A stretch of DNA of 64,000 bases from positions 77,624,001 to 77,688,000 of the forward strand of contig OZ241827.1 of assembly GCA_965202585.1 (NCBI GenBank), read 5' to 3'. Positions 1 to 35,240 of this stretch are shown piece by piece. The first letter of the stretch is position 1. Each line of letters opens with the position of its first letter. This DNA comes from Thalia democratica. Its lineage: Eukaryota. Position numbers and translations under genes: made by a program. The notes beneath the pieces are model-generated. The model saw nothing but the letters and a program-made list of their open reading frames with translations, was not told the DNA's origin and did not search any database.

Positions 1-79
1 AACTTATTAAACTGTGGGTGGCGTGATCGCTTTAATTTTATTAAATTTGCGCACGAAACAAATTTACTTCGTTTTTTAG

Positions 80-720
80 GATCAGCAGAACATAAAAAGT
101 GCGTAGGTCAAACATGATATTTTAGATGATAGAGACCTGAAATTTTGAAATTGCTTACAAAAGTTTGTTTAAATACCGAAATAAAATTAACGGTCCTGGA
201 AAGAAAATTTTCACTTATTCTAGTAACTACAACTGTCAAGGATTATAAAGACAACTAGCTAAAATTTCATTCAGAAAAGTTTAGTGCTGACGTACTTTAA
301 AATTATTTCCATCGTTTATTGGTTGCATGCAAGCGATCAGACTCTAAATTGACCAATGGGGGTATTTCTTACAGCGCAGTATCAAAAGGAAGCTTAGATG
401 AAGACACTCTGTTTGTGGTGGACAAAATTAGTGGGTCAATTAGATTAATGGGTTGTTTAGAGGCAAGAGTTACAGGCTAAGGATAAGAGCAAGAGATTTT
501 ACAGGGAAGAGCACTCAAGCCAGACTGGTTGTCAATGTGTTGCCTAGTAACCTTTGTTCGCGTAATGGCAATATGAAAAATAAACTGACCATGATAAATG
601 TAATTGAAATAACTTCCCCTGGACAAGTGGTTGGTACCATAAACACTACTAGATCTGATGTTGTTTATGACATCATAGATGGTTCGGGAAAGGGAGTTTT
701 TAGAGTTGATCGATATACAG
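80..720 (+). pseudogene. Heavily degenerate cadherin-repeat exon (P1)
   Basis: TVKDY(K)DN*LKFHSEKFSADVL* with TAG 256-258 and TAA 298-300. Frame changes between LHASD and DS..NGGISYS (about 335) and between MGCL and GKSYRLRIRARD (about 460). Donor G|gtcggt at 721. The 5' boundary (ttttttag 78-79) is tentative. Confidence 0.75.
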
Positions 721-3700
721 GTCGGTAAAAGATTGATTAAAAGAAAATTCTAGTCCTAAAATAAGTACATACTTTAAAATTTTATAAGAAAAAGTTAACT
801 TTTAGTATTTTAACTTTATCAATTGTATTTAATGTGAATAACTTTTAGTTTGAACTTTTTAAATCTAGTTTTTACTATTATGGACAAGTTATTTTCAGTT
901 TAAAATGTTTTAGTAGTATCATAACATGGTGTGTATTTTAAATAATAACTAGCCTGATTTTTCTTGTTTTCATAGTTAATATATCCTCTTTTTATACTTT
1001 TAAAACTGTCTAAGGTTCAAAGAAAACATAATATAAATTTTTAGTTTTTATATAAATTTTGCACATAATTTTAAAGTTAGAACATAAAAGATTTAATTAA
1101 TTTTACATATAAACATAAAATCCGAATTTAATTAATTTTTTAAAGTTATTTTATTTTTATCTGACAATCAAAAAACTTTCTAAAAAAGTTTTTAAATTTT
1201 AATTTTTTCAAAACCCAAGGTTTAAGTAAACAAGTTCAGTTGAATTTAATGAATTTTTGTTCAAACAAAACTTAAATAATTGTTTTGGAATTTTATATAT
1301 TTCTTAAACAGTCAAACAATTGTTTGATACGTTTTGTTGAATCGTGACTTGTTCATGTTTGCATGTTTTGTTTTTCATACAAGCAAGCAGTAATTGCATA
1401 CCATACATTTAATCTTTAATTGTTTGTAAATGTTTATAAACTATTGTAAAAATTTCCAATTCTCAGTATGTATAAACGTTTAAACTACCATAACATTTTT
1501 ATACAATATTTATTTTAACAGTTTATTACTAACAAAACTATGTTTTACTCCTATACTTGCATATAGGAGATCCTCAGTTGTTGTAAATAGATCTGAAAAA
1601 TATTTTTTGAACCAATGAATGGAAGTTCCATACATAGCTAAACAATAAAATTACATAAAAGTTTTATAAGTTTAAAGACAGTGTAGTTATATTTGTTAAA
1701 TTTACTTATAAACAGGGAAAGTATTTTTTTGACATACAAAAGCTTTCAATGTATACATATTAATAACTTGTTTAAACGATCAAGAAATTCGGCAAAAACA
1801 ACTACTTATGCCTTCTTATTGAAGATTATCGGTTTAAGTAGCAAAAAGGAAATTTATTTTTCTGAAAAGGATGTGCTCTATAAAGCTTGTTTATCACTAA
1901 ACTTGGTTATTACGTCACAGTAGTGCCCTTAAGCTGCACTAGTAATTTCTCCTAAGAAATTTATATGAAGCTACTTGATGAAGTGAAACAGTTATGATGC
2001 TTGATTTTTCTTACTTGAATAAAAAGCTTATACAGACATCCTTAAAAAATATATGTTGTACAAGCATGTTAAATGTTATTGTTTGTCTACTGTCTAGTTT
2101 TATCTGAAAGCAGTTATGTACTTATAAAACAAGTTTTAAAACTTACTATAACTATATTTTCATCGTGTTTCGTTTTTCTAAAATAAATAAACAAATTAAA
2201 ACACAAACTTATTTTTGTTCTATGTTTAAATTTTTGGATTTTATTCTTTAAATATCAAAAAACTACTTGAGGTTATAGTCGTTCTCTTATCTTAGGAAAC
2301 AACATAGTTTGAAAAAAATGGTTTCTTACTTATATTTAATGACAAATAAAGTGCAAAATTTCTATCTATGTTAATCTTTAAAGTTACAGTGATCTTAAAT
2401 CAAGACTATCAAGAAAGCACAGTTTTTTGCTATTTTTTCTTTATTAAGTTATATCTTCGAAAAAAGGTAAAATAAGGAAATTCTTAATCAATTTAAATGA
2501 CAAATTTCTTTAATATATGATTTTAAACATTTATGAGAGAGTAATTTGAAGTTGAATTAGAATTTTTTTAGTTAAGCCAAGTACTAAGATATTTGTATTT
2601 AAATTAGATGCTTTTGCTTCTGTTGAAGTTTTAGCTGCTTCATGAGCAATTAGTCTTGTGTAATTAAAAGAAAAAAGAAAAAAAAGCATAAGCTGAATAG
2701 TAGTAAAGATTCAAGAAAGTGCTTTGTATTTGCTCAAAGTTTAAATTTCGGTTGAAAAATTTACAAAGAAGAATTAAACAAGAATAATAACAACAAAAGA
2801 AATAAACTTTACCCGCTGTATACACAAATAAGTAGAATGGTAAATACTTGAAGCTTGTTTAAGTTACACAAAAGGTTCTCGACAGTTTATAAGTCTTTGT
2901 GCCAACAAAAAAATACTTTTTATTTCAAAAAGAGCAAGAAAATAATAATAGGGTCGGGCATGAGTCATATCTTTTGTTTAGGAAGTTGAGTTTGTACAAC
3001 GCAGATTCTTAATTTGAAAGTAAAGAATAAATTAACACCTTATTTTCTCCCCCTTTTTATAGTCATACTTAGTTGGGTTTTAGCTCGCTTTTGTTGTTTT
3101 TGTCTTGGTATGATTTAAATAAAATTTAAAGTCTTAACTACATATACACAATTATTTTAATTCTAAACAATTTAATTTTTGTAATACAACAAAAATCTTT
3201 AAACAATTTTTGAAAAACCAAGTAGGGAAAGTACTCTATGTTGTTTAAACTTTAAATGACAACAGAATATTAAGTCCCTTGACATTAAAAATCGGTCAAG
3301 TACATACAATAAGAAGTATAAAAATACTTGTCAAACTCTAGTTTGACACAAAAACTATCATGTTAAATTACAGCAGAGAAAATTTCCTCAAAATGACAGC
3401 GGGTTTGTATACTAAAGTCTCATTTGTCAGCTGTTTTTTTTTATGGTGCACTTGTTTTTAATTTCAGATAACAAGCAAAAACTAGAATTTTAACTTCGGG
3501 CGCTTGTCTAAAGAACAATTTCAGTCAAATTTTAAGTTTTTCTTTCATAAAGTTCTTTCCTAAGTTAATGCATATAACTTATGTCAGATATTTGTTTTCG
3601 CAAACTATCTGTTTGAAGTAATTTTATATTTTTGTATATAATCCATCCATTTTTTATTAAAAATCTTAGTATTTCTTCTGTGAGATTTACTTCACAGTTT

Positions 3701-4616
3701 CAGTATAAAACAAATAGCTGTAAAAACATAATAGTTAAGAACACAATAATTATACGGTATTAGTTTCATTCAATATATTTTCCTTAAAAAATGGTTTTTG
3801 AAAATAAAAAATCTACTAAAATATACTGATTGTAAAAAATGTGTGAAAACATTTTATCAGTAACATATGCATGCCCTTAATTAATTTGATATAGCATATG
3901 TTTTAAATGATCCTGTTCTTTTTTTAGTTTTACTGACATTTTAGTAATTTATCATTACGCCTGTAAGACTTAATTATGAACAGAAGCATACTGGAAATAT
4001 GTTTGGACATGCTTTTTTAATTATCTTTTTGTGTTGTCTGGTTTAGGAATTACCTCCTACTAAATCATTTTGAAATTAAATTTTCTTCAATAAACATTTT
4101 TTAGCTTTATTTGTGTAACTTTTTTTTCAATTTTAAAATGAAATTTTATCAAGCTAAGTTTTTATTTTAGTTTAAAAGCATTTCAGTTTATGTATGTTTT
4201 AATATAATTATTTCGATATATTTAGCTAATATAGTACTATGACTGTTCTCTCTTTTTTAAACATTAATCATGATCTAAATATTAATCGATCACGTATTTT
4301 TTGTACTAAATATTAAAAAAAACAATTTTTTCAGTTAAAAAAAATTATATACTTTTTAATAAAATATTTTTTACTACAATTTAGAAAATTTATAGAAAAT
4401 GACAAAAAAAAACTAAAACTAATGATAAAAATTGTAAACAACTAGAATTAAACTGTAAAAAATTGATTAAATACCTGTTGTTTTTGTTTATATAAAAAAA
4501 AGTTAAAAACTATTTTTTTAAAGTCGTGTTTTCCTAAACAAATTTTTACTTACTTGAAATAAAAAAAACAAACAAACTTAAAAACATGTAAAAAGTAGAC
4601 TTTTAATATTTTTCAA

Positions 4617-7600
4617 GACAAGTAGTTATTGCTCGATCATATGACAGAGAAATGGAGAAATATTATTGGCTGACAATAGCATCACGTGATAAGCAGGGTT
4701 CATATCTATCTGAAGACTACATAAAAGTAGCAGTGACAGTTATGGATGTTAATGACAACTATCCAGTTTCTGACCAGCCAAGCTACAATATCTCGTTAGT
4801 TAAATAGTACATGTTATGTAAAAAATAAACTAAATTACTATTAAAAGCTAATTGTTACAAAAGTTTTAAAAAAAGTACAGTAAAATAAAAAAATTAGTGA
4901 AACTTGTTTGTAAATATGATGGTCATTAACTTTACGTTTATTACAAAAACTTAAAGTATTTTAAAAACTACAAAATCTTGAATGTTTATATATGAAAAGT
5001 ATAATAAAATTTATTTTAAACGTTAAAGCAAATAGTTGTAAAAAGTAAATTAAATATATTTAATTACAGTGTGGATTCTGGAACACCTGTTAACACTCCT
5101 ATATTAAATATACAAGCATCTGACAAAGATGAAGGTTTAAATGGAAAGTTTACATACACTATCTTGAAAGCAGAAATATTTAAAATAAACTCTGAAACAG
5201 GTTAATTTCAAAAGTATTTATGTGTTTGTTTACTATTTTGGAATTACAGAAATTTTGTAAAAAAAAAAGTTTATTGAGCTAGTGTTCAGCAACATTAAAG
5301 AATTAAAAATTAAATTTTAAACTGAAAATGTGTTATGCATTTAGTTGCTATAGGTCTATTGGAACATCTTTAAAATAACTATTTATAAAAATCTATAAGT
5401 TAAAAAATAAATAAAAACTGTTCATAGTTTTATATTTTAAGTTCAAAAAGTTGTTTTGTTTAATATTAGATAACCCCTTAGCTAATATCTGTTTTGTAAC
5501 GTATGCATCTAATTTTTTGTACTACTTATAACTTTTATTGTTTATTAGTATAAGTTATTTATAGTTACCGTTTAAATAATGAGTTTGTTTGTAAAATTCT
5601 ATAGATTGTAATAAGTATTAAAAACTGCAAGTTTAAGCGTATGTTAAAAAAGATCCAAGCGAAACGAATTCACTGGAATATGTAACAATATTGGAAATCG
5701 TAGAACATTCTTAAATTTAAAAAATAACTTATATCAAGTAACTTTTTTATGTAATTAAACTTCAACTTGTTGTTGTAAATCCAAATTAAAAAAAAGTTAT
5801 CATTTACATTCAATTAAAGGCTAAATCATTAGCGGTATATAATTAAATACATTCTCAAATTTTTTTTTACAGTTACTGCTGATATATTGTTAGGAAATTT
5901 ACGTAGTAAAATTTAGTACATACGTCATGAAGTTCAACGTGACGTCGAAATTTTTATAAGTGGTTTTTATGTCATTTTAATTGGTTTTTGTCTACTTTTG
6001 TATGTACCTAGCTGAAAAATGTAGTCATATAAAGGTCAAAACGTTTGTCAAAATGGTAGGTATGCTAACGATAGTAATTAGTATTTAAACTTAAGACATA
6101 TAATGCACTTGTTAAGTACACTTACAAATAAAACGTTCTGCTAGAGCTATAACGAATTCGGTTACATCAAAAAAAAAAAGTTTGATTAAAAAGGTACTGA
6201 GTTTTACTCACTTAAATCTGTTTTAAATTTATATTTAATTAAACGTTGTTTCCTTTGTTGTACATGAAAAATTAGAATTACTAACAAAAAAAAATATATA
6301 GATTGATTCTTTAACAGAATACAATAGTCAAGTTGTAAAATTTTAACAAGATTTTAATAAAGTCTCAAAGTTGACAAAACAAAACTTATATGACCTGTAA
6401 GTCACAATAAAAATTAAATTTACTTACAATACCCTGTGGGTTTATAAAAGGAAGCCAAATTAAACAATTGAAACCGCTCTCACAGAAAGTGAGCTAATCC
6501 CTATTTACTTTTACCGTTTAACTTAGCTAGTCAAAAGCTATTTTGAATGTCTTTTGTTAATCAGTAGCGCGTAGAAGTAAAAGGATGACATTTTAATTTA
6601 CGTGCGATTAGACATATAAAAAGTCGCGGTCTCTATAAGAGCTAATTCCAACCGGATATTAATAAAGTTTTTAAATTTAGTTTGTCAAATATAATTTAAT
6701 ATATTACTGTTAAATTGCAATAAGTAAAATTTAAAATATTTTTAATAGTTATCTTAAACCAAGCCTATAGTTTGGTGAAACTGTTTATTTTTATTTTGAA
6801 TAAGGGGTTTGTTTGATAAACTGATGTATGGCTGGTTTATTTTATTTCAAAAGCTTTAAATTAATATTTTAAAACACATTTAAAGTGTATTATATTATTT
6901 TTTAACTTCAAATATCGTTTTTGCTTTAAAAATCATATACACAAATAAGAATTTTATAGTAAAACTAACTTTGATATAGTTTTGGTTATAGAAATGTTTA
7001 CCTAAAATGTGTTCCACAATAGTGTAAAAAACTACTTATATATATAAAGTAAAAATAATACACATACCTGTTTCAGTAAATGCGCATAGGTTGTGCTTAA
7101 CACTTATAAAAATTACCTTCAAAACATTAAATTGCCATAGAAACAAAAAAACCGAAATAAGTTGTAAAATTGCTCATAATAGCCAAGAGTTTGTTTACAT
7201 TCACTAGAAAGATCAAACGCAGTTATACTGCTCATTTAGCAATTATTTGTTTTAAAGCAACAATGCTTTGTGAGTGAACTTGTTTTGATTTGAAAGCATC
7301 AATCTAATTAAAAAAGAAAATATAATAAAGTAGTAATTATTTCCTGTTCATTTGATCCCTACCAATTATGCATAGCAAAGGTTAATTTTATGAGCAAGCA
7401 TTCTTAAATGATTAATAACTTAAGTAAAGATATTTGCAAAAAGTAAATAGTTCAGCAACTCAAATATAAAAAAAAATCTGATAAAAAAGTTATATTAATT
7501 TTATCCAAGATAAAACTTATCGAAAAATAGATATACTTTTGTTTCTAACAGAGACTTTTATTTAGCATATTGACATTTTTTAAATTTTAGAGAAATATCT

Positions 7601-10600
7601 GCTTTAAACACTTACAGTCTTTTATTTTGTTTTATTAAAATGCTAAAAAAAATGATATTTTTTTTAGTTTTTGAATAAGATAGCAATTGCTTGTGTTACT
7701 TAAGTTAAATTTAATTTTTAAATGATGTTACAAAACAATATTTGTTTAATCTTGCTTTGTGTATTGTCTCAACTATTGTTACGAAATATTGAATGAAGCT
7801 TATAAATAAACATAAAACTTTATTTTAAATAATCTTGTTTGTTCAAGAAATCATTATTCTTCTGCAATTTAATAAAACCACATGTTTTTATTATATACGA
7901 GTAAGGGTTTTTATTCAATGAAACACGTCAAAATACTTGTGTAAACCACAATTCCTTTAAAAATCTTAAATTCATCTGATAAAATAATAAAAATAAAATT
8001 AGAATCTTTTACATTTTTTGTTGGTTGAATTAAAACATAAAATGGGTAATTTATCAACTAATGTTATTGAAATGCCAGTTATGTAGATAAACAAGTATAC
8101 TTAACTCCTAAATAACAAAACATGTCTTATGCACTGAATTAACCTCAAACTAAATGCAGCAAAACATATAATGATTGCTCTCAAGTCTAATACTTGCGTT
8201 TAGTTCTAATTTTACAAAGTAGATCTTATTATCATTATTTTTGTCAAAAATATTTTTTAACACCTTATTAAATACAAGAATAAACTTGTTGCAATTCTAA
8301 AGGTAAAAATTAAAACAATTTTATCAAAAATGTTCTGTCATAAAACCTACATTTTGAAATGAACTTTTATTAAATACGTTGTCAAAAGTTTTATACAGAC
8401 TTTTGCAATTGATTGTATCCTGTATTTTTATGTTTTTAGTAATCAATAATACTAAAGTTTATTTGAAAACTCTTATGAACAAAATCTTTCGAACTATTTT
8501 ACGAATTGTTTGATGTGGTCAGACTTTGAATTTTCATTTCCTTACAACAATATGCATTTGACAGCAAAAATATACAAATTTTGTGTTAGCAGCAAGGTGT
8601 TTTATTTTTTAATTTAAAAGATATTATAAAAATAATACTTTAACAGCTACTTGTTTGTCTTAATTATTTGAAATATTAAGCTTACTTAACAAAGCAAAGT
8701 GTATGTGTTTAACATCAAAATAAGTTTAAACTAGTCTGAATAACTTGTTTAAAATGTAAACTTAAAAAAAATTAATTATTTTGATTAATTTGTTTTTATG
8801 TGATGTATAATTTATAAAATTGAACAGAAACGTCGTTAAAAAATCGTTTTTACTAAATTGTTAAAATACTGACTATTACTGTAAAGTTCATAATATATAT
8901 GTTATTCATTACATTCGTATATACAGTAAAGTAAACGACTGTTGAAAGGAAATCTTTTAAAAGCTTCAAGTACTTTATTTTTCTAAATGGAATCAAAAAC
9001 AAATAATATTAAAAAATAAAAACAATCTAATGAGTAATACACTTGATGTTATAACACAGTTAAAAAAAGTTGTACGACAACAAAAACAAATCAGTTAAGT
9101 TTTTGATAAACATTTCTTGTGTTTAAAATAAAATTACAGTACGGTACATAGGATAATAAAAAAGAAGAACAAATATAAACGTTCATGCAAAACTGTTACT
9201 TCTCAGCAGGAGACTAGTTCACAAAATATAATAAAATTTAGACAACTTGGGTGGTTACTTCAAAGGAAACCAAAAGTTTTAAAAAAATATTTTACCTATA
9301 AACTTTATAGAATTTTTTATTGTTTATTACCACAAAGATAAACAAATAACGTAATCGTAGAAAAGTAATTTATCATAATTTGTTGTCTTATAAACATTAA
9401 CCAAGTGGTTCTGTTTATTAACAAAAACGCTACCCTAGCTTATATTAAGATTTAAATAAACATAAGATTTTAAAGTATTAGTTAATTTTTATTACGTTTT
9501 TTCCTTTATATTACCTTATATTAAATAATTAAATAAAAAATATTTTTAAATGGAATTCTTTTTGTCCTTTTAAAACAGCTTAAAGTATTTAAAGTTATGT
9601 TATTGAAAAACATCAAAAAATGTATTTTAGTTTTCACAGCATTCCCACGCTTGGTAATTCTGTGTGTTTTTACCGCAATTATGACGTAATTAAGACTATA
9701 TTAATTGAACTTGTTTAATGCCAAGCTTCTGTACAACTAGACAAAACTAAATGTAATTATGTATTTGTGTATTAGGATAATTTATAAACTACTTTTACAA
9801 TAGTTTTAACTCTATTATTTAATAAACTGAAACTAATTAAAATGAACAAAATGTTTTAAGACTAGAGTATACGTTAGGTAAATAATACTTGTATTTTTTA
9901 TTTATTAATTCTTTTATAATTGACAAAGTTTAATTTTATTAACATTTATACGTAGTTTCTCTATAAATTAAAAAAAGACAACGTTTAATAACTAATAGAA
10001 GAAATAAGAATGTTAATTAAGAATTAGTTTATTTTTTCAAATGTTTAATTTTTAATGATGTAGTGTAAAACTAAATAAAGAAGTAATTCTTAAGTTTTAT
10101 ATAAAAAGTAAACTGAAAATTAGTTATGTTTTACTATTTTTTTAACTGTTTTAAATCTATTTCTAGGTCAAATTTACACTGCAAAAGAGCTGGTACCAAA
10201 TGTACTTGATGGATTAAAACAAATTTCGTTCGTTGTAAGTTTTAATTAAAATATTCATGAAACTATTTAAAAACTTTAGCCTAAACTCAAGATTTTATAA
10301 TGTAATATGACTCAACTTAAAAGCATAAGTTTTAAATTTTAATCTTCATTTAGTTTTGTGATGATTTCTGAGGTTTCCAATTTACAAAAAACTGAACGTA
10401 ATTTTTTTATAGCTGTGTTGATAGATATATTTATCTATCTTTAAAAGGTAAATGAGTGGAGTATATTTTATATCTTAAAGTAGCTTTTTTGTTTAAAACT
10501 TTATTTAAATTCTTGATTGTATTTAAAATTGTTAAGATTAAATAACGTAATTTCAAAAATTACTTAAAAAATAGAGAATACTTAAAACTTATCAAAATTT

Positions 10601-19184: not shown

Positions 19185-19322
19185 GTACGTTACAAATGAA
19201 TTAAAAAACTAATGTCAATATAATTAACATAAACCAAATAAATTTAGATTTATCACTATACTTTAGTTTTATTTAAGTTGTTGTATATTTAAACTATTAA
19301 CAAACAAAATTAAAACTTTCAG

Positions 19323-22300: not shown

Positions 22301-25300
22301 ATCAAGGAATTGTCGTAATTAATCAAACGATTGCCGGTGAACACTTACTGAAAGTTTGTATTTTGGTTGTTAATTTTACAATTTATTATAATAATAAGAA
22401 GGATTTGTACTTATTTGAAACTAAAAAACTAATTATGCAATAATTTAAAAGATAAAAGCATCAGATAATGACATTGGAGTGAATGGAAAAGTATCTTACA
22501 ACTGGTACGATAAAAATAACAATGCTTTTCAATATTTTGATACTATTACTGATAGTGGAATAATCTATTTGAAAAAGCCACTGACGGAAAAGGGTTTAAA
22601 TTGATTTTTTTTTAATTCAAGTTTTTATTATAAATATGATTGATTAGTTATTTAGCTTATAAAAGTGGAATTGAAATAATATGTGCATATATCAGTTTAT
22701 TTTATTTGTTTTTCGTAATATAAAGTTAAATATTTGTTGAATGTCTCAGTCGTGAAACGAACGGAAGTTTTAAATTGAAGCAGACATTAATAAATAAGTA
22801 AATTTAACACCTGCAACAATAAATTTATTGTCTGAAATAATTTTACACTTACTACTTATAAACAGCACAGTTGCAAACAATTGGTTATTTTGTTGCAGAT
22901 GAAGAAAGTTTTAGTTTTTTTATTCAAGCAATAGACGGAGATGGGAAATATTCTCTTGTTGGAGTGAATATTAATGTTATTTCAACAACAATTCAGTTAC
23001 CAGTTTTTGAAAAAAGCATAATAAACGTTGTTGTACCTGAAGATATAGCTATACGATATAAAGTAAGTTTCCCATTTTTTTACAAATTGTCTTTGTATTA
23101 TTAATCGTTAAATAAACTATGAGTATGCATTGTGACGAAAGAAACTTTCAGAAATAAGTTGAACAGTAAGTCACAAAATATTATATTTATTTCAAGTGTT
23201 ATACAAACATTTAACTTATATTTAAAAACATACAATATAAGTTGAAATAGTAGAGAATAAAAACTGATTAGATTTAATTTATATACTATTCATTATAGAT
23301 TGCTCAACCACAAGCTTTAGCAAAAAACCGAGAAATTTACTACAAATTTGCAAATCATCAAGGTAATTACTTTTATACATATCAATGCTATCATAATAAA
23401 CCATGATAACTTGGCAATAATTTTTTGTCAAGTACAAAACTGTTAAGTAATTTTTGAAGTTTTTGTTGAAAACTATTTAAACCAAGTGAAAATTTTTGCT
23501 AAACAATAAAGTAATAAAGTTGAAAGGTATTCAATGAGAAAATAATCGTCATAACTAAGTTACAAATATATGATAATAAAACAAACAGATGGTGATGAAA
23601 CACAAACGAGAAACTTCAAAATAAACAAACTGAATGGAGCAATTACCCTAACACAAGAGTTAGATTATGAAAATAAAAATTATTTTGAGCTTATTGTAGT
23701 TGCATATGTAAGAGAAGAAACTGAACTTATGGCTGAATCTAAAGTAAGAAAAACTTTCTTGAAGTTTTAAAAAACTGTTTAATTGAAGTAAACAATTCAA
23801 TTTCAAAGAAATTATACTGTTAGGTTTAATAATATATATTTGTAAACAACACAAAATATATTGCTTATTCAGATAACAATTGAAATTGAAGACATAAACG
23901 ACAATCCACCTCAGTTTGATAGTCTTTCATATAAAACTTTTGTTGTTGAAAATAAATTGCCATATGAACCGCTTGTACAAGTCAAATGTAGTGATAAAGA
24001 CTCTACAAAATATTCAACTATCAAGTATAGGTAACGATTTGAACTAAAATACCAAATATTTATACTGTCTTTTTTAAAAACTAAAAGAAACTAGATACTA
24101 CATATAAATTAGATTTCATTTAATTGCTTTTTGTTGGCAGTAAAGTGTAAAATTACTGAAGTTAACTCAAATGAATTTAATTAAATTTTCGTAAATAAGT
24201 TTAGTTTAGTTGATAGTACTGCTTAATTAATAAAATATAAAACAACACTGAGTTTTGTAAACTGAATTATTTTTTTTCAGGTTCAATGAAAGTCATCCAT
24301 CTTTTAATATCAACCCAGTGTCTGGGATGGTTTCCCTGAAAAAATCTCTGGACAGAGAAAACTACATTGAAACAAAAGGAACAATTAGTCTCAAAGTGTC
24401 TTGCACAGACGGAAAATATGTTGATAGTTCAAACATAATTGTCACAATTAAAGATGTTAATGACAGAAAAGCTGTGTTTAAAACCGACTCAAACCAGTTT
24501 AATATTTCTGAAGGGTAAGTGTTGTATAAAAACTATAGAAGTTTAAATATTTATGTGGTCAAACAAAATTATTTTTTTTGTTTCTTTCAGGGCTAAAGCA
24601 GGATACAAAACAGCATCAGTAATGTCAGCGGTAGATCAAGATTCTTCAACAAATGCTTCACTTGTAACAACAAGTATTATTAAAGGAGATCCTCTTCATT
24701 ATTTCGATGTGTTTTTTCAATCGAAACACTCTTTAGAAGCTTCAGGAATGTACTTAAACATTGGATTTGAAGTAAGGATTTGCTTATGTTTAAACTTAAA
24801 TGCTTTGTATTACAAAGTGTTGTAATAATTCTTCTATTCTTAGGTTGCTAATGATATTGATTCAAACATTCCTGATGTAAATGAAGTTACTGTCTCAGTT
24901 TTTGACGGAATTCATCACTCTTATGCACAAGCTACTATAAACATTGTAAACCGAAAGTACAAACTACCAATTGGAAAACCGCTTTGCAAAAAGGTCGACT
25001 TCTTTTATTCCACTTTAGTTACTACGTTTTATACTTAAAATAGCTTTACAAATTAAAAAAATACATTATTACAAGATATAACAACTATATGCTACGGTCG
25101 TTAAATACATTTTATTTTTTTACAGCTTTTTTACAACGTATCTGTCAATGAAAACAATAAAGTAAACTCACAAATAGCTACAATCGACATTGCAGACAAA
25201 TATAGTAAAGCTATTTACACTTTGATTGGAGAATTTAAAAATAGATTTTCATTCGATGAAAGTACTGGTTAGTAAAACTTTAAAAGTAAACCAACAGTTC

Positions 25301-26844
25301 TATAACTATAATACTATCTAAATATACTTTTTTTAGGAATAATTTATGCGACTGAAAGTTTAGACAGAGAAGAAAGAGATAGCTACCACTTAAACCTTCA
25401 AGTTAAGTACTCGAACGATTTAAAGTGCCTGATACAGGTAAAAAAAATTAAAACAACTAGATTAATTAATCATTCAAAAAAAAACGATTATGTCTTACTC
25501 AAACTTATTTTCTAGATCTTTATAAAAGTGTTAGATGTGAATGACAACTGGCCAACATTTACAAAAAGTCAATTGAGGGTTCGTGTAAAAGAAGATTCGG
25601 TTGTGGGAAGCGTTGTTTGTCAATTTGCTGCATTTGATGCTGACATTGGTTTGTTTTTTGAAATCAGCTACAACTACCTGAATAAAAAAATAAACTTAGT
25701 TTAAAACAAAATAAAAAACATTTTTTTAAGATTATTTTTTGTTTCCAAACTATAAATAAGTTTAAAAACAAAAAGACACATAGTATTTTATTTTAACTCC
25801 TTTAACTAACATTTTAGGTGAAAACTCTCAACTGAAATATGCTCTACAACGTCACAGTTTAGATTCAGTTCCTTTTGAAATTGATGAAAAACATGGTTAT
25901 TTGATATTACAAAGACCCGTTGATCGTGAAATTAGAGACAAATACCTTTTCAACATTACTGTTAGTTAAATTTTTTCTTGAAATTCATATAACTTTAGTT
26001 ACAATTTTAATAAAGTTTCTTAAGCAGTTAAAGCTACAATAGGTGAAGTTTTATTTTGTCGACTAAGCTGAAGAAAATTGGCAAACATGCTTTGATTTTC
26101 AAACATAGAAAAATATTGTTAACTCTATACACGAGATACAACTATAGTTTTACTATAATTCTTTTTAAAGGTAAAAGACCAAGGGATTCCAGTTAAGTCA
26201 ACATCAGTTCAAGTTAATTTAAGAGTAACAGACGTGAATGACAATGCTCCTGTATTCAATCAAACAAGTGTTAGCTTTCAGTATTTAAAATGTTTTATGA
26301 CTAAAAATCCGTTGACCGTTACTTATTTACCATAAATTTTACTTTACAAAGAGTGGTGTGCTTTACTCTAACAAAATACAAAATTTAATAAAGAAACCTT
26401 TTAATTGTATAATTAATATTAATCGACTCTTTTTTTTCAGTACAAAGCTGAGGTTAAGGAAAGTGCCAAAATTAGCCATCTAGTGGCAAAAGTTGAAGCA
26501 TTCAGTTTAGACGATGGAGTAAATGCGGATTTGCAATACCTCATTGTTGGAGGAAATGAGCTTAACAAGTTTCAAATCGACAGTAGATCAGGTATAAGAG
26601 AATGACTTAAAAAATAACTACTTAAATCATTTATATAGTGACAACATTCAAATACAACTTTCATTCAAATACAGGAGAAGTTGTTCTTCTTGATGAAGTG
26701 GATTATGAGATGAACAAATATTTTGTGTTGACAGTCCGGGCGCAGGATCTTACAGATGACCCACTTATGAGCGACACTTCTCTCAACATACGTGTCATTG
26801 ACGTCAATGACAACAAACCTACTTTTAACAACATCAATTTTCCT
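19323..26844 (+). CDS. FAT1/FAT3-like: Uninterrupted cadherin-repeat exons E17-E39
   Basis: Exons 19323-19481, 19598-20003, 20159-20370, 20672-20923, 21108-21255, 21410-21633, 21699-21885, 22226-22353, 22452-22593, 22899-23062, 23299-23362, 23589-23743, 23873-24030, 24281-24514, 24591-24771, 24844-24993, 25126-25267, 25337-25437, 25516-25648, 25818-25960, 26171-26269, 26441-26591 and 26675-26844. All are GT-AG and phase-compatible with no stops; motifs include SLDREKQD, QDENDNPP, ELDYENK, DVNDNAP. Confidence 0.85.
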
Positions 26845-27024
26845 GTGAGTATAAACTGTTTGAATAAAAAGGTTTAAATAAAAAGCTAATGTCTTTTGTC
26901 TTTCAAATTAAAGATATTCGAAAGTCAACTATTATTTATTATTTTGTAAAAAGTTCAAATCTGGTCATAGTTCGTGCTTAAATCGTAATTTAGATTCAGT
27001 TTTCAAACAAGTTGTTATTTTCAG

Positions 27025-27947
27025 ATATTCGTCAATGAAGATATCATTGATGACGTCGTAGCAACGATAACTGCTTTCGACAAGGACCAAGGCGCAGGGG
27101 GCGAGGTCAAGTACTCGTTGCTAAGCAACGAAGCGGACCAGCTGCCGTTTCAATTGGATGAGGACAGCGGTCGGCTGTCAGTGGTCGAACCAGGTCTGGA
27201 CTTTGAAGCCCGCCGTTCGTATGCCTTTGAAGTAGTTGCCAGGGACAACGGAACTCCTTCCCTAGCAACGAGCGTCGACGTCGCTGTCAAAGTGAGAGAC
27301 GTCAACGACTGTCGACCGCGGGTGGCGCTCAAGAGTTTGCATGACAACGTTGCGTTGCGTTGTCAAAGTGACGTCACGACAAAGTGCACTGCGAGCGTGT
27401 CGGAAGCAGAATGGAGAAACTTTTTTTTCGGAGGAGGGCATAGTAACGGTGGGGGCGACGGATAATGACGTTGCCAAGGGAAACGCGGCCCCTTTTAAAT
27501 TTAATCTCGACTCACAAATAGCAGGTTAAATAACTTGTTTGTTTTGTGTATACATTTATTTAGCTCAAACTTACTTATATAAGCATTTTAAAAAGCCCAT
27601 TTCAACTTATTAGTTAATGTACGGTATATCTTTTTATACATGAAACATAATTTTTTTTTTTTTTTATGAAGAAAAAATTAAAATAAAGTCATAGCTTAAA
27701 CCAAACACTTTTCTTTTAACAGGTGAATTTGTTTTTAATGACAAAAATGTGCTGATATCAAACAACCCGTACGAAATAGAAGACATTTCATCAGATAAAG
27801 CGGCTAAAACGTTCCATTTCACCATAACTGCTACTGACAGTGGAAATCTCGAATCTTTGCCTCTTTATTTAGAAGTTGTCATTTTGAAAGAAAGCAAGTA
27901 TCCACCGGTTTTGATCTCTCAAAAGATTCAAATTATGACTACTGAAG
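27025..27947 (+). CDS. FAT1/FAT3-like: Late cadherin-repeat exons E40 (27025-27524, one frameshift) and E41 (27723-27947)
   Basis: E40 is 500 nt where 3n+1 is needed. The frame switches between ...TASVSE and FFSEEGIVTVGATDND (27403-27428, which includes an 8-T run). E41 is in frame. Confidence 0.8.
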
Positions 27948-28138
27948 GTTTGTTCAAATATAAACTAATTTCGAGTATTATAAAAGGATTTTATTATAAC
28001 AACCAACATGTATACACGAAAAGATATATTAATAATTACCCAAACTTAGCTACCTTTTATACGACGGTCTTTATTTTACTGAATTGAATATTAATTATTC
28101 GTCTTAAACTAGTTTTTAGTTTTACTGTTCTGTTTCAG

Positions 28139-29889
28139 ATTACTTCAAAGGAGGAGTGATATCCTCAAAGCTGTACGCCACCGACAAGGACCCCAACGAC
28201 TTGCAGCGGCTCACTTTCAAGATCGACTCGCTCGCCGACTTCGAGTCGTTCACGGTGAACCCCCTCACCGGCAAGCTGTCGGCGACCAATGGCGTGCGAG
28301 GTCGCCACAACGTCACGATTGGCGTCAGCGATGGCAGCAGGTACTCGACGGGCCGGGTCGCCATCGAAGTGGTGAAAATTTCAAAGGAGTCGATTCAGAG
28401 TTCGGTCCAGGTCACTTTCGAGGGGATTTCCCCAGAAGCGTACCTTTCGACGGTTCACGGCAAATTTTTAGCGGCCCTCGGTGACATTCTTCCAAGGGGT
28501 TCGAACCCCGGTGAAAATGTGGAAATTTTGTCCTTGAAACGCATGAATGATTTCAATGCCCAGCTGGTGTTCAGCGTGAGGTCGCCGAAGCGTGAAGGCC
28601 AGTACCTGAAAGTCGGCCGCCAGCTGAAAGACTCGCTGCCGCTGCTCACCGAGAAGGCGGGGGTGAGGGTTACGGACGTCAGGGGGGAGGAGTGCGACCT
28701 CGAGTGCGCCCACGAGTGCCGGCACGACGTAATTGTGACGTTATCAGGGGAAAGTCCCGTCACCACGAAAAAGTGGAGCTTGCTGACCCCTCATTGGTTC
28801 GAACGCGAGGAGAAGTGCGTGTGCAGGAAAGGTCACGCGGGTGTGAATTGCGCTTCCGTTTGCGCTGGAGTAACGGACGTGTGCGAGGAAGTTGGCGGAA
28901 AGTGCGAGCTGGACGCGAACGAGGTGCGAGGCTACCGGTGCGCGCAGAAGAACCGAAGGAACAGCGCGGTTTCTTTCGGGGGAAATTCCCTGATCGAGTA
29001 CAAGCTGAACAACCCTGAAGTGTTCAGTTTGTCGCTGAGGTTCAGAAGCCGGCAGCGCGACGCAAAACTGCTGGAGGCCGCGGAAGAGTCGGGAGGCAGC
29101 TTGGCGCGCGTCAGCGTCGACGAAGGGAAACTGAAGCTGGAGTTCGCGTGCGGGTTGGACGGCGGAAACATGCAAACCATGGAAATGAGCGAGTCGGAAA
29201 TGAGCGACGGAAACTGGCATGACGTCACAATCGAACCCATTTCCGACAAAGATTGCGCTTATAGGTATGAAGTTTTTATTAATATTTACCATTAAAATTT
29301 TTATCAAGATTTTAATTGTATTTTCGTAAAAAACTTATGCTTGTTACTAGTAAGATATACTAAGTGATAGTTTTCTGGCTTAGAGTTTTATATTAGCTGC
29401 TTACTCTTATTATAACGACTTTTATTAATGCTAAAACATAACTACAAAAGATTGCGCTTAGATGTATTTAGCTTTAGTTTTCTATACTAGTTATTTAGTT
29501 CTTTATCAGTTAGTTTTATATGCTTTTCTTTGCTAACTGTTAAAAAGCATGCAATGGATCTAATTTTACCAATCAAGTTACGACATGCTATTGTTAGTAA
29601 ACATTTGCATGTACTATATATTGCTATATATTAACTATAACTAATTTTGATTATTCTAAATAAATTTTTACAGGTTGGTAGTAGACAGTAAATACGAGGC
29701 TACAGGAGCATTGGGTGAGAACAAAAAAAGAAAGTTGAAATTTGACAAACTTACACTGGGAGGATTAGATAAAAATAATGATGGTATGATTGGATGCATT
29801 GAAGAAATTAAAATTAACCAAATTTTAATTCAAGATCTTCTTCATTACAATAAATTGAGAATTACTAAGAAACAAGAAGTTCTTGATAG
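28139..29889 (+). CDS. FAT1/FAT3-like: Last cadherin repeat, non-cadherin/Cys-rich segment and laminin G domain (E42 28139-29264, E43 29674-29889)
   Basis: ORF 28156-29295: GGVISSKLYATDKDPND..., SVQVTFEGISPEAYL (Fat-type membrane-proximal segment), Cys-rich CVCRKGHAGVNC, then SFGGNSLIEY..LSLRFRSR..DGNWHDVTI and LTLGG..GMIGCIEEIKIN (LamG). Confidence 0.9.
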
Positions 29890-30089
29890 GTTAGTTTCTG
29901 TTTCTATACTCTTTATACGTTAGAAGAATATATGGTTATGCTAAATAAAAACTATACAAAATTCCTACTATGTTTTAAGAAAATGTATAAATCTAACTAT
30001 TTTGATGCAACATAGACATTTAGTTTTAATAAAATGAACTTCATTGAAGTATCAATAAACAATATGTTAAAATCTACCTAATTTTTCAG

Positions 30090-30629
30090 ATGTAGCATGG
30101 ATATTGGGTCTTGCGTGAATCATTTTTGTAGCAACGGCGGTAAATGCGGACTAGACATGTCTTTAGAGGGAAATTCCCCAATATGCAAGTGTAGTTCGGG
30201 TTATGCAGGGCCTGATTGTCGCAAAAGGAAGGTTTGTGAAGACTTGCCGTGCAAAAATAAAGGAATTTGCCATTCACAAGCTGTTGAAAGTTTTAGGTTG
30301 GTGAAATTTAAAATAGTTTTAGTTATTTCCTCGAATATTCAATACTTATTTTAATAAAAAAAGCTTAATCTGTTTTACAGATATGAACTTAATGTTTTTA
30401 TGAACTTGTTCTTTGCTCACTTTTAGTAATTAGTAGTACTTTACTTATAGGATATAAAACCATTAGTTTTATCATTATCACAGATGCGAATGTAAAGAAG
30501 GTTTTGGAGGAGAATTTTGTGACGTCATATGCAAGGAGGGGTTCACCGGAGTGAATTGTGACGTCATAATAAATAAATGTTTCAGTTACGATGAAAATTT
30601 TGCTTGCAACTGCTCTTTATCAAATGAAG
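30090..30629 (+). CDS. FAT1/FAT3-like: EGF-like repeats (E44 30090-30296, E45 30484-30629)
   Basis: CVNHFCSNGGKC..CKCSSGYAGPDC; CEDLPCKNKGIC..RCECKEGFGGEFC. Confidence 0.88.
30491..30568 (+). repeat. In-frame 39-bp (13-aa) tandem duplication in EGF exon E45
   Basis: tgtaaagaaggttttggaggagaattttgtgacgtcata / tgcaaggaggggttcaccggagtgaattgtgacgtcata = CKEGFGGEFCDVI / CKEGFTGVNCDVI. Confidence 0.8.
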
Positions 30630-31299
30630 GTAAGCTTTTTTACTATGGATATTTGCTTTGGATGTAGTAATATGTAACTACAAGCAACAAACTAATTTTG
30701 ACTGCAAACATATTCTAAAATTTTTATTATGTAAAAAATTTGCTGCTAATAAACGTAAAGTTTGAAGCTTTCATGAGAAATGCTTAAACATTTTTTTTTC
30801 ATAATATGTAAAGTTTATTGAAATAAAACACTATCTTATCTTAAAAAGACGTTATTTACTAATATTAAACATATATGCTTTTAAAAGCTTAAGACTTTAA
30901 ATTTCAACAGCAGTATTATAATCAACTACCAAAGTATAATTTGTTTAATATGGATTCTTAAAGACGACTTTATCGCTTGTTTATTAAAACTAATCCTGTT
31001 GTTTAAATAGGGATGTATTTTTGTCACGCAATATTTCTTTTTTTTGTATGTCACGCAAAAACTTACAAATCTATTATTTATTGAAAAGTAATAATAAGAA
31101 CGTAATAAAATACTATTTATTAGCTGTATGTGTAAAAAAATTATAAAAAAGTAGCATAAAAAGTACGTAGTTGAACTTGTAAAATTCATAGAAAAAAAAA
31201 GCTTAAACAATTGTAATGGTTTAAAATAGCTTATAAGTTCCAAGTTTAAAAGTTTTAGTTAAAAACTTCAAATCAACAAAATAATAATGATGCTAACAG

Positions 31300-31515
31300 G
31301 TTGCAAAACTATCCTAGAAAATCAGACTAACGCGAAGAAATCATCATTTCCTTATTTAATCCTCATAATTATTATTTTAATCGTCATAATCGTTGCCACC
31401 ATAGCAACTGCAGTCGGCTGCTACGTAAGAAGGAGGCGAGGAAAAAGAATGCGAACCGGAAGTACTATTTCCACTAAAGAAAAGTTTTATTTGACACAAC
31501 TGAAACACAGAGAAG
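31300..31515 (+). CDS. FAT1/FAT3-like: Transmembrane exon E46
   Basis: FPYLILIIIILIVIIVATIATAVGCYV followed by the basic stop-transfer stretch RRRRGKR. Confidence 0.9.
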
Positions 31516-31627
31516 GTTTAAACAGTTTACATTAATTAATTTTAAAGTTTATTATTATATAAGTCTTTGAAGTTTAATTCACTAAAAGCAGAAATATTAA
31601 CGATCTATAAAATGGTTTATTTCATAG

Positions 31628-34600
31628 ATCACTCGTCAGATGGAAACCAGTCGATTCCAAAGCCACCGATTCCTGCAAGACCTGTTGATTATCAGAGATG
31701 TTCAAGAGAAATTATTGACAGCATGGTTGAACAAGTAAATATAATTATTATTATATATTCAGTTCTTAGTTTACAGTTTGCATACTTCTAATTACTACAA
31801 TTTAACTATTTAATTATCTGTTTTTAAAAAATTTTCAGTTGAAAACCAACAATGAAATCAACAATTTATCATTAAAAAAATTAATTACATGTTTTAAAAT
31901 AATTTTTCAGGAGCTAAAGAACAGGAAACAGTCAAATGACGTATTCGACAAAAGTATGACGTCATTCCAGGACAATGAAAAATTGACGTCATACCAGGAT
32001 AGTGGAAAGCTAACGTCATTGGCTTCCGATTCAACTTCGTTTCAGAAAATTCCCATGTCTTGGACTGACTATGAGCACAATCATGTAAGTAGTATAATTG
32101 TTAACACCAAAAATATTAGCTCAATTTGAAGTTGTTATTTCTGTTAATTAATTATTATAGTTCACACCTGTAAACTGACACAATGGTTATTATATTATTT
32201 TAACTATAATTAAAAAAAAATACAATCTTTATATTTATAAGTATGATTAAATAAAATTTTAAGTTATTGTAAGCTTTCACTGACTGTTCATTAAAACTAT
32301 AATAACTTTTTTAAGTAGATATTTAATTTCGTTTAAACAAAATGCTTCAACTAATTTTTAAACCATCACAGTTCAGCGGAAGTATATCTGGTTGTTCGTC
32401 TTACAGCAAAAGAACTCCGATCCCGTCTGCGAAATCACCGAAACTGTTCACCAGGATTCCCAGATTTCAGCAGCAGTCAGTTCACAAAGTAGCAAGCAAG
32501 CAGTCCATTGCAGAACAGCGTAAGTTTTATAACAGTAGTCGAGTGGTAGTCAGGCGTAGATTGATTCTTTATTAACTTTTTCAGTTGACTTCCTTGTTTT
32601 ATATATTATTTTAATACACTTTTCTATTTATTTTTAGCAGTGTTTTAGACTCTAATAATAATATGATTTTTTTGGAAAACATTTAAAAAATCCAATAGTT
32701 TTAAAGATTTTTTTTTATTTGAAAAACATGTTAGTTCTCACTTTTTAAAATTCTTATAATGTAAAATTTTCTTTAAGACTTGATCTCTTATCATGTATAA
32801 TTGTTATTAAATTAATTCAATCACTGTTTTAAAATTTTAACAGTATGTTAGCTAGACGTAGATATACACTGATTTTGTTTTAATTTTTCAGTAAAACTTT
32901 ATAATTTTTAGATTTTCAAATTTTTAACATTTATTTTACTTTATTGTATCTTTTGAAAAAATTTTTGATTCGTAACGTATTTTTATTACAAGATATACTT
33001 ACAAGTTTAAAAATTTTTAATATCTAATTTCAGTTCTAAACAAAGTTAAAAAAATATTAATTTTTAATTAGAACATCTTTAAAATGTAAATTTTGTAACT
33101 TTGTTTTTTTTTCTCACTGTTTTCTTAACTAAAATTTGTTTAACCACAGTTTTGTAATTCTAAACAGTTGGAAGAAAACCAAAAAAATTGAATTTAGCAG
33201 AATTCAACCGTAATACAGGTCTATAAATAAAAAGCTTGGTTATGGTGTTTTTTGTACAAATTTAGCATGTACTCAAAAACGTGGTGTTAATCATTATAAT
33301 AAATAACTTCAACTGTTTTTTTCTGAAATTATCTGAATTTTGAAAGTTACTTGTTTATGCTAACTTTCAAATAATTTAACATGAAAGACTTAAAATTACA
33401 TAAAACATTGAAAAATAATTTTGATTTCATATAGCTAGGTATATCCAGTTATAAGCTTTTGCTTTATGTTTCAAAATTTAAAGATAAGTATGTCAACTAT
33501 TATTATCTATCCTGTTATACTTAGTGGTTTTACATATGTTGTACTGTTGTTTGTTTTTAAGTTTCATTTTAAAACTTTCATCTAAATGAAAAATTTCTAA
33601 GTTTACCATGGTTATTAAAAAAATTTAATGTTAAACTTTATTGTTTAATGTTAAAACTTTTAATGTTAGTAAAAGTGTTAATTTATCTGGCTTCAAAAAT
33701 TTTTAGTTTTTATTCTAAACGTATTTTTTTAAACTCAAATGATAACACTTATTTTAACTGCTCTTCATTTTTAGCATGTAAATTATTAAGTTGTGATGAA
33801 TTTTATATTTCGTACAAAACAAAAGTTATTAATGGTTTTATTAGGCTGTTATTTTGTAATTCGAAATATAACTTGTTACTTTTATTACGAAATCTCAAAG
33901 CATGTTGATAAATCTCATAGCATGTTGTTTTTGCATGTGTATTATCATGTAACTTGCATTTATTTCAGTATGTTATATTAGGTTTTTCTATACATGTTTT
34001 TTTTTTTACAAGAAGTTGTTTTATTAATTGCATATTTTGAAAAGAAAACTAGTTATCTAAATATTTAATAAAATGATTCTTAAGAACCGATTAACTCTTT
34101 AAACTCAATGAGAAAATGTTAACTTTTTATTTTTAACTTAAAAAGAAACTTTAAATAAGTTGTAAAAGTCTCTAAAACTCAATTATAAAATTTGACGAAT
34201 CCTTTTTAATACTTAAATAATTTTATTCACCAGATTACGCATGGGACGTTTCTGATTGGATTAAAAACAACTCGTCGGCGGCCAATCACGTTCCTGAACA
34301 CGTGACGTCAGTACCAGTGAGGCTGAACAACAGATCCGACGGTGTGACGTCATCAAACAATCGCGTGACAGCACATTACAACTTGGCTGGTAGAAAACCG
34401 AAAAGGAAGGGGAGAAAATGCAGCGACGCTTCCACAACAGATTCAAAACTGGTTTGTATAAATTTATAAACTTAAAAAGTTTTATAAGTATAAATATATA
34501 TATCTAGACACAAAATAGACAAGTGAATGTTGATAAAACTAAACATTTGAAGCTTTTATATAATAAGTATATAAATATTTACGTAAGTTACAAGTCAAGA

Positions 34601-35169
34601 TCATTAAATGACAAAGTAATTATTTATTAGTTTTGATTCGAGTATTTATTTTTTCAAACCAGATACGTCATCCGCAAGACGACGAAAGCTCCCAGTATGA
34701 CGTCAGTAGCGAGGTTACGACGGCTGCCAGGCAACCCGGGCGCCTATTACGTAGCAACTATGACGTCACCAACCCCCGATTCGAACCTTCGAACATCCTG
34801 CCATCCGTTTCCATGGAGCACGAGCGTTTCTCAATGGACGAAAAAATCTCTGAGGCCTCGGAGGATTTCTATGACGACACGGACGAGTACGAAATTTCCG
34901 CTCCGATGCCCACCGACATTATGACGTCACTTTTGGAGGGCGAGATGGAGGTGGACATGCCGACTCCGGCGAGGGCGCGCAAAAACAAGTTTCACCCCGA
35001 CCAGTACCTACCCGCCGTCGTCACCATGGCAACCAGTTCCTCGTCGTCGGTCGACGGTGACGTCACTGTACAGTTGCTTGGCAACCAGCTGCAGATGTCG
35101 TCGCTTTCCGACTTGGAAGAAGATGACGTCAACAATTCGTTGATGTTACGTCATAATGACAACGCTTGA
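31628..35169 (+). CDS. FAT1/FAT3-like: Cytoplasmic-tail exons E47-E51, ending at TGA 35167-35169
   Basis: Exons 31628-31734, 31911-32084, 32372-32519, 34234-34451 and 34663-35169, all phase-consistent. Motifs PPIPARPVDY, HYAWDVSDW (spanning the E49/E50 junction) and KFHPDQYLP. Confidence 0.85.
31956..32024 (+). repeat. In-frame 27-bp (9-aa) tandem repeat, about 2.5 units, in cytoplasmic exon E48
   Basis: atgacgtcattccaggacaatgaaaaa / ttgacgtcataccaggatagtggaaag / ctaacgtcattggct = MTSFQDNEK / LTSYQDSGK / LTSLA. Confidence 0.75.
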
Positions 35170-35240
35170 AAAACTTTACTTTTGAGAAACATTCCCTCTT
35201 TTCTCGTTTTCAGTGTCGAAGTATTTTTGCTGCTGCTTGA

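Follow-up and report, generated by a model that had tools for sequence, protein, structure and literature searches.

Why should a giant Fat1/3-type cadherin appear ruined over its first exons and almost intact over the rest? The question is raised by a window of 64,000 nucleotides (nt) from Thalia democratica, C2:77624001-77688000 of an 802-Mb assembly, where C2 is the contig carrying the array described below; positions without prefix refer to this window. A Fat1/3-type cadherin body lies on its + strand at 199-35169 and comprises exons E02-E51 of a 51-exon model. An earlier note, made from the letters alone, had described it as a giant gene with dead 5' exons and nearly pristine 3' two-thirds. 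Its assignment to the Fat1/3 type is borne out by cadherin, LamG and EGF matches in Pfam, by the cytoplasmic tail and by the stop codon at 35167-35169. The body is, however, not a whole giant gene, as exon 1 (2666 nt) is absent and the stretch is one unit, the third (U3), of a tandem array. With a probability of about 0.78, U3 is a broken, 5'-truncated tandem copy (an unprocessed pseudogene) of an intact Fat1-like gene, and its polarised decay results from layered replacement within the array.

The array consists of about ten head-to-tail units of 38-40 kb each, about 450 kb in all, among which some eight are near-complete bodies, with fragments besides. In a genome-wide probe search every match fell on C2 at 77.548-77.995 Mb, with weaker fragments up to 78.025 Mb: the 1145-nt exon E42 gave eight full copies and one partial copy (97-98% identical, spaced by about 38 kb), the exon-2 block and the last exon ten copies each, and E13-E16 eight copies at an identity of at least 95%, plus fragments. 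Two hundred kb around the window were added, giving a contiguous 264-kb stretch for the unit map. U1 (C2:77545278-77583044), a full unit, is the head of the array and lies 79 kb upstream of the window; U2 is a full unit with an 857-bp deletion; and U3 occupies window positions 1-39714. U4 (39715-57203, + strand) is a wrecked 5' half, which extends from an exon-2 relic to E13 only, carries many lesions of its own and is 94-97% identical to U3 until about 15.2 kb of the unit, then 70-87%. In the self-comparison of the window, 220-17575 is found again at 39715-57203, identity being 95% as far as about 13 kb, 90-92% from there up to 15.2 kb and 77-87% thereafter. U5' (unit positions 2742-37765) follows a gap of about 70 kb after U4 and old fragments.

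The head unit encodes an intact gene, so that the search for an intact paralog which the earlier note had proposed was successful. The U1 model has 51 exons, a coding sequence of 13806 nt and 34 cadherin repeats (EC) in 4601 amino acids, with no stop and no frameshift; its exon borders were set after corrections from RNA junctions and domain logic, and no lesion was found against the 51-exon chain. A profile built from named Fat proteins, which was used for the repeat counts, detected 11 cadherin matches just upstream of the part that U1 shares with the other units, eight of them inside one open stretch of 923 codons. This stretch starts with MKKLPNY..., followed by a hydrophobic leader and then DEFRFTRFHYDG, so that U1 has after its leader the F-x-F-T start of the named reference Fat proteins. 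It belongs to exon 1 (start codon, signal peptide and EC1-8; Pfam Cadherin, E=9.5e-75), which is single-copy in the genome and present only in U1; matches of the Pfam families Tox-ART-HYD1 and Fibulin_C on the same exon are below cutoff, overlap cadherin repeats and were ignored. As read from the sequence, the predicted leader-like N-terminus is confined to U1 and missing from U3. Further Pfam matches in the Fat body are Laminin_G_2 on E42 and E43, EGF on E44, and a Jagged-like atypical EGF2 above its cutoff on E45. A tunicate protein, Ciona intestinalis protocadherin Fat 1 (XP_018670260.2 and its cluster), is the closest full-length relative of U1 in blastp, being colinear with it (amino acids 151-4318 against 24-4342, 29.8% identity over about 4170 residues), and Fat 1-like proteins of Glandiceps (hemichordate) and Myxine (hagfish) and Fat 3 of Pelodiscus (turtle) also give single alignments of more than 4100 residues. 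The U1 protein shares with these proteins the 34 cadherin repeats, followed by LamG and EGF repeats, and the F-x-F-T start, with a predicted single transmembrane segment and cytoplasmic tail, but is only about 26-30% identical to named Fat1/3 proteins and thus represents a very divergent lineage.

Every later unit starts its homology to U1 about 40 nt inside exon 2 (about position 199 for U3), and therefore lacks the promoter, start codon, signal peptide and EC1-8. As exon 1 is missing, only about 26 cadherin repeats remain in U3. The intact parent thus lies near copies that are partial, with exon 1 single-copy, as in partial tandem duplication. Hence the suggestion of a natural null or truncated Fat allele fails, as the organism carries the intact 51-exon U1, with the only exon 1, on the same contig.

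In U3, exon 1 and the acceptor of exon 2 are absent. The exon-2 relic (199-720, EC9-EC10), lacking its first 40 nt or so and 84% identical to U1, contains two stops in the frame of the parent (256 and 298) and frameshifting deletions of 8 nt (about 304-308), 1 nt (about 337) and 1 nt (about 463). The 8-nt and the first 1-nt deletion are common to U2 and U4, and the second 1-nt deletion to U4 only; being shared among units, these are old lesions. From E03 on, the definite lesions are three stops, two +1 frameshifts and one slipped acceptor, all private to U3. The E03 acceptor is changed from CAG to CAA (4615-4616), where the AG is shifted by one base and an in-frame AG lies 6 nt downstream; this acceptor and its pyrimidine tract are intact in U2, U4 and U5'. 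E08 has stops at 12619 (CAA to TAA) and 12643 (CGA to TGA), E16 a stop at 18900 (AAA to TAA, where RNA contigs, U1, U2 and U5' read AAA), E17 a +1 insertion at about 19161, and E40 a +1 insertion at about 27421 in a T run (C-GTTTTTT to CTTTTTTTT). Two possible splice lesions lie at borders without RNA support, namely the E27 donor AT at 23043, which is common to U2 and U5', and the E35 donor at 25667 (GT to GC). The tally of the earlier note (at least seven disabling lesions, then two, then one) matches the lesions measured against U1. The 3' two-thirds are nevertheless not nearly pristine, since they hold the stop at 18900 and the frameshifts at 19161 and 27421, and the same lesions contradict the idea that the 3' part of U3 was kept as a working truncated transcript; U3 is presumably untranslated. 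Other units are damaged as well: U2 has about ten lesions along its whole length, including three frameshifts in 5' exons, five premature stops (two in 5' exons and three in the 3' body), the 857-bp deletion, which removes two exons, and a lost donor, and U5' has a 4-nt deletion in E49, its single clear lesion in 11 kb of coding sequence.

The decay of U3 is polarised, with the excess mainly in the old exon-2 relic. Six, two and three lesions fall in 831, 1299 and 8960 coding bases of the exon-2 relic to E04, E05-E12 and E13-E51, respectively, and an even distribution of lesions over the coding bases is rejected (exact multinomial P=2.5e-5), which disposes of an even Poisson scatter. Without the exon-2 relic the contrast between E03-E12 and E13-E51 (three versus three to five lesions) is marginal (P=0.05-0.11), so the polarity claimed earlier stands for the whole body but depends mostly on the relic.

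Divergence outside exons is stratified in the same direction. The non-exon distance between U1 and U3 is 0.182 at 309-6780 (stratum I), 0.074 at 6800-16000 (stratum II) and 0.042 at 16000-35169 (stratum III). The border of identity to U1 is sharp at about 6.8 kb of the unit, as is that to U4 at about 15.2 kb, where identity in intron 12 (15158-17424) falls from about 92% to 70-77%; this drop marks the recombination border of a homogenised tract of U3 and U4. As introns show the same stepwise pattern as exons, selection on exons cannot be its cause. Sliding identities among units further reveal that the closest relative of a unit segment shifts along the unit: at 2.8-5.8 kb U5' is 98.4% and U3 83-87% identical to U1; at 23.8 kb U3 reaches 99.0% and U2 95.6%; and at 26.8 kb U2 and U5' are 99% and U3 96.4% identical to it. 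Such mosaic similarity and homogenised introns fit the signature expected of unequal crossing-over and gene conversion. The proposal of the earlier note, in which an older pseudogene makes up the 5' part, thus comes close to the data, though in the form of layered replacement rather than of a pseudogene written over the 5' part.

According to the proposed mechanism, the exon-2 relic, lying beside the truncation point, would have been decaying since an early duplication, whereas unequal crossing-over and gene conversion would have replaced the middle layer much later, and the 3' layer to an even greater extent, with sequence of the functional gene or other units. When the head gene exchanges unequally with a truncated unit, the resulting hybrid would keep the old unit's sequence 5' of the crossover and take head-gene sequence 3' of it, and for this reason the 3' end should be refreshed most and the stretch next to the truncation least. 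After its last refresh, U3 would have gathered private stops and frameshifts along its whole length.

RNA and DNA reads were compared over 14500-20499. Two marine metatranscriptome contigs of 4409 and 2577 nt (runs X1 and X2, one 2016 sample) are spliced from E10 through E20, with junctions at 14600/14667, 14764/14923, 15157/17425, 17680/17749, 17982/18086, 18374/18477, 18902/19028, 19184/19323, 19481/19598 and 20003/20159. The 5'-block exons are therefore genuine parts of an expressed mRNA and connect in phase with those of the 3' block. Two 'lost acceptors' called at 14897 and 20140 were rejected, as the RNA uses 14923 and 20159. At 18900, where U3 has TAA, the RNA reads AAA, and the +1 insertion of U3 at about 19162 is absent from the X2 contig, as it is from high-depth DNA contigs of X6 and X7, while X1 has no visible gap there. 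The cDNA comparison thus returns intact codons at two U3 lesions; the RNA differs from U3 by 2.4%, however, and must stem from another copy or allele, so that the refuting condition of the earlier note does not apply as worded and no assembly error is shown. Of 33 listed RNA differences, U1 shares 17 and U2 18, while about 15 occur in none of the compared units, so that assignment of the RNA to any one unit was rejected; it comes from an intact-type copy, probably the allele of another individual. Relative to the assembled units the RNA is a patchwork with about 1% private differences, mostly transitions, which hints at a highly diverse population or at exchange between units in other individuals. 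At its 5' end the 4409-nt contig runs about 2 kb beyond E12, i.e. into exon 1.

These reads also bear on the misjoin of a pseudogene to a functional gene that the earlier note had considered. The same 5' plus 3' layout recurs in U1, U2 and U5', and the RNA joins E12 (14923-15157) directly to E13 (from 17425). In DNA contigs of two independent read sets, exon words have a depth of about 250-270 versus about 60-140 for unit-specific intron contigs, a several-fold excess which fits a real multi-copy array. A misjoin of this kind is thus not supported.

Several results weigh against regarding U3 as a simple pseudogene, and limit how the evidence is to be read. The lesions were called in assembly sequence, rather than raw reads, against the intact U1 model, and a gene finder bridged the real U3 lesions with invented exons; the exon model is validated by RNA for E10-E20; and units beyond C2:77798000 are known from short probes and 4-kb pieces. 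Weighting coding length by the divergence of each stratum predicts 2.7, 1.7 and 6.6 lesions where 6, 2 and 3 are observed, a moderate fit only (P=0.035; P=0.13 when both possible splice lesions are included). This is to be expected, as some of the divergence in the young strata stems from differences between functional templates and not from time of decay. The nominally private changes of U3 in E13-E51 have a ratio of non-synonymous to synonymous rates (dN/dS, or omega) of 0.38 (P=0.0003 versus neutrality), and unit-private changes in E41-E42 of seven truncated units have an omega of 0.41 (P=0.003). Finally, on the deep alpha/beta branch separating U1 and U5' from U3 and U4, fixed differences amount to 12.5% in the introns of 2800-6780 and 11.0% in the exon-2 relic, but to 1.9% in E03-E04 (P=7e-11). 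In the truncated lineage, conservation of E03-E04 thus outlasted the death of exon 2 by a long time, and these exons have turned neutral only recently.

The last point leads to the first rival explanation, in which the truncated units are or recently were used as genes from exon 3 onward, with U3 a recently dead member. They might serve as alternative 3' bodies spliced behind exons 1-2 of the head gene in read-through transcripts, or be transcribed on their own, possibly with trans-splicing, to give truncated Fat proteins. In E03-E04 identity to U1 is 96%, compared with 76-87% in the flanking introns and 84% in the exon-2 relic; on the alpha/beta branch these two exons are 6.5-fold better conserved than such neighbours, and identity falls abruptly at their borders. 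Such a pattern could arise from use of truncated units from exon 3 on, from recent capture out of a second, deeply diverged functional lineage, or from exon-limited conversion; the last, considered for the E03-E04 islands, is made less likely by the abrupt drop at the exon borders. Use as genes would also account for the retained E03 acceptor and pyrimidine tract of U2, U4 and U5', for the near-intact U5', for E42 (1145 nt), which has no stop or indel in eight of eight copies, and for omega values below 1 among truncated units (0.2-0.5 pairwise). On the terminal branches, however, the signal is gone: in stratum I the exon rate of U3 (1.9%) equals its intron rate (1.8%), E03-E04 of U4 likewise evolve at the rate of introns, and omega between U3 and U4 is 1.5. 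Each of the three truncated units read end to end is disabled (U2 by its ten or so lesions, U3 by six to eight from E03 on, U5' by its 4-nt deletion) and U1 is not; the private changes of U2 are neutral; and the RNA lacks both the stop at 18900 and, in X2, the +1 at 19162. We therefore consider this explanation unlikely.

Low omega values could moreover have another source, since functional alleles may have been copied into the units. Every pairwise dN/dS value lies below 1, with a range of 0.23-0.70 in the 5' block and of 0.17-0.32 in the 19 exons that closed the first-pass model (E33-E51 of the final numbering), so that the comparison by block suggested earlier finds both blocks below 1; dS is about equal to intron divergence. 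Omega of private changes is 0.23 in U1 (selected), 0.77-0.92 in U2 (neutral), 0.38-0.44 in U3 (intermediate) and 0.03-0.22 in U5' (low). If the low value of U3 is assumed to reflect variants imported from functional templates or alleles and then a brief neutral phase, a two-component reading of its private changes in E13-E51 (26 synonymous, 36 non-synonymous) leaves about 24 neutral ones; as 4.7% of random substitutions create stops, about one stop is predicted there, and one is seen. A related proposal holds that the units were kept for long periods from exon 3 onward, either as alternative 3' bodies or as a conversion reservoir, U2 and U3 being dead members; we regard this as improbable. If it were true, the locus would vary a 25-repeat ectodomain, the transmembrane segment and the tail by choice among tandem modules.

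It is highly improbable that the array or the U3 lesions are assembly artefacts, i.e. over-expanded or mis-joined repeats and homopolymer errors around one real intact Fat. The +1 at 27421 does lie within a run of T, the one at 19162 is missing from the high-depth DNA contigs of X6 and X7, and the private lesions are seen in assembly sequence only. Against this, the units are 2-18% apart and differ by unit-specific indels, the 857-bp deletion and the type of their 5' ends, where assembly duplicates would be near-identical; the word depths of both read sets fit several copies; and most lesions are substitutions and not errors of length. Rare variants are lost from Logan contigs, so that failure to see the U3 allele there neither confirms nor refutes the private lesions and is no evidence for artefact. 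Equally hard to credit is a conversion reservoir of silent units that diversifies the expressed head gene as a cell-surface recognition molecule: one expressed full-length gene is followed by many promoter-less 5'-truncated copies, similarity between U1 and the units is mosaic, unit variation is mostly synonymous or conservative and the RNA is itself a mosaic, but the units are 97-99% identical in protein and would supply little diversity, copying of lesions from the donors would do harm, nothing points to somatic conversion or to a raised germline rate, and polymorphic recognition genes are not known among Fat cadherins.

As a broken tandem copy, U3 resembles partial tandem or segmental duplicates that exchange sequence with their parent, such as PKD1 and its pseudogenes, CYP21A2/CYP21A1P and the red/green opsin arrays. 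Common to these and the Fat array are a parent with truncated, promoter-less copies, mosaic similarity, homogenised introns, private lesions and hybrids from crossing-over; the Fat array differs in its 38-40-kb unit with 50 exons and many copies, in its 5'-to-3' gradient of age, and in the conservation of E03-E04 beside a decayed exon-2 relic. Silent arrays of 5'-truncated conversion donors are represented by the chicken immunoglobulin pseudo-V genes and Neisseria pilS, where, as here, one expressed full-length gene stands beside copies without promoter or leader and similarity is a patchwork; in contrast, the Fat copies carry stops and frameshifts and offer little diversity, and programmed or somatic conversion is without support here. 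In Drosophila mod(mdg4) and lola, common 5' exons are joined to alternative 3' modules. The geometry of the Fat array would permit head exons 1-2 to be spliced to a later exon 3, skipping the acceptor-less exon-2 relics, but the modules read (U2, U3 and U5') are all broken, not open as alternative modules should be, and no RNA with this join appeared among the reads compared over 14500-20499. Compared with named Fat genes, U3 is broken and lacks exon 1 (leader and EC1-8), and the head gene has about nine truncated tandem copies behind it. The literature searched contained no account of tandemly arrayed Fat genes, nor of such a 5'-to-3' gradient of age.

The remaining features of U3, all on the + strand, are as follows. 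The inter-unit spacer at the U2/U3 junction spans 1-198, with exon-2 homology from about 199, and window 1-227 resembles 37962-38170. In the exon-2 region a gene-finder call of a 71-nt 'exon 3' with a shifted exon-2 donor was rejected, as exon 2 joins the next exon in phase, the peptide FRVDRYTG being continued across the joint by QVVLARSLDRE. E03 (4617-4794) and E04 (5070-5200) have open frames and form the conservation island within introns of about 80% identity. E05 (10167-10234), E06 (11757-11920) and E07 (12234-12384) are open with AG/GT splice sites, and E08, with its two premature stops, occupies 12580-12805. E09 (14072-14211), E10 (14384-14600), E11 (14667-14764) and E12 are open as well, the E10/E11, E11/E12 and E12/E13 junctions being present in RNA, in which intron 12 is spliced out (15157 to 17425). 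E13 (17425-17680), E14 (17749-17982) and E15 (18086-18374) are open with RNA-confirmed junctions, and are followed by the disabled E16 (18477-18902) and E17 (19028-19184, insertion at 19161-19162). The 22 exons E18-E39 (19323-27024, EC19-EC32) are all open, with E18/E19 and E19/E20 confirmed by RNA, while E40 (27025-27524, EC32-33) carries the +1 insertion and is 499 nt long in seven other units.

E41 (27723-27907) and E42 (28120-29264) encode EC33-34, a linker and the first part of LamG; all eight copies of E42 that were examined are open. The AG ahead of E42 (28118-28138) is AT in five of eight units (U2, 77826k, 77908k, 77947k and 77980k), which is either a splice lesion or a mis-set exon border; it was left uncounted as a shared lesion, as all units have a strong TTTCAG acceptor 19 nt further on and the effect depends on the model. 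E43-E45 (29674-30629) hold the remainder of LamG and EGF-like repeats, and E46-E51 (31318-35169) the transmembrane segment and the cytoplasmic tail, where the segment is predicted from a hydrophobic stretch followed by RRRR in E46. The 3' flank and spacer of U3 (35170-39714) contain a piece of about 95 nt (37845-37939) that is 84% identical to part of U1 exon 1. It belongs to a family of pieces of about 105 nt, 84-92% identical to positions 1064-1168 of U1 exon 1, which lie about 330-430 nt ahead of each exon-2 relic (including C2:77623874-77623978) and twice, inverted, upstream of the array (C2:77525589 and 77539522); they may be left over from the junction of the first duplication or represent a small dispersed repeat.

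Downstream of U4, an older unit fragment (58233-63837, + strand) matches unit positions 9207-15186 at 77-85% identity and belongs to a fossil layer of the array. Between the U4 and fossil fragments and U5', about 70 kb (C2:77688001-77755000) are without array homology, and the edges of this gap hold isolated weak cadherin-profile matches and old unit fragments of 70-85% identity; the array is therefore interrupted and comprises two or more layers of different age. As a whole the window is very rich in A+T, with a G+C content of 22-29%, and of 22-25% in introns and spacers; exons are richer, up to about 43% in 2-kb windows (at 28-30 kb), and open frames together with G+C content alone mark out most exons in this genome. 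The palindrome TGACGTCA occurs 18 times in the window (+ strand listing), versus 0.38 expected, with 17 sites in 17636-35131, one at 63615, and almost all in 3' exons. In exon 2, intact U1 reads ...TATGACGTCATAG..., while U2, U3 and U4 read TGACATCA, a CpG to CpA change that has abolished the palindrome motif in the dead copies.

Phenomena of this kind are known, and what is unusual here is the scale (about ten units of 38-40 kb) and the conservation of exons 3 and 4. A false lead is removed, as this organism has neither lost nor truncated its Fat, the intact copy lying 79 kb upstream. U3 provides a large-scale case of uneven ageing in a pseudogene, where a partial duplicate can look half alive since exchange with the functional head gene would refresh its 3' end more often than its 5' end. 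For annotation, gene finders will tend to call the eight or so 50-exon bodies Fat genes or to stitch units together, and calls of function from dN/dS should heed that omega is below 1 here in copies with stops. If the conservation of E03-E04 reflects use of the truncated units, the locus would represent a new way of diversifying a giant adhesion receptor.

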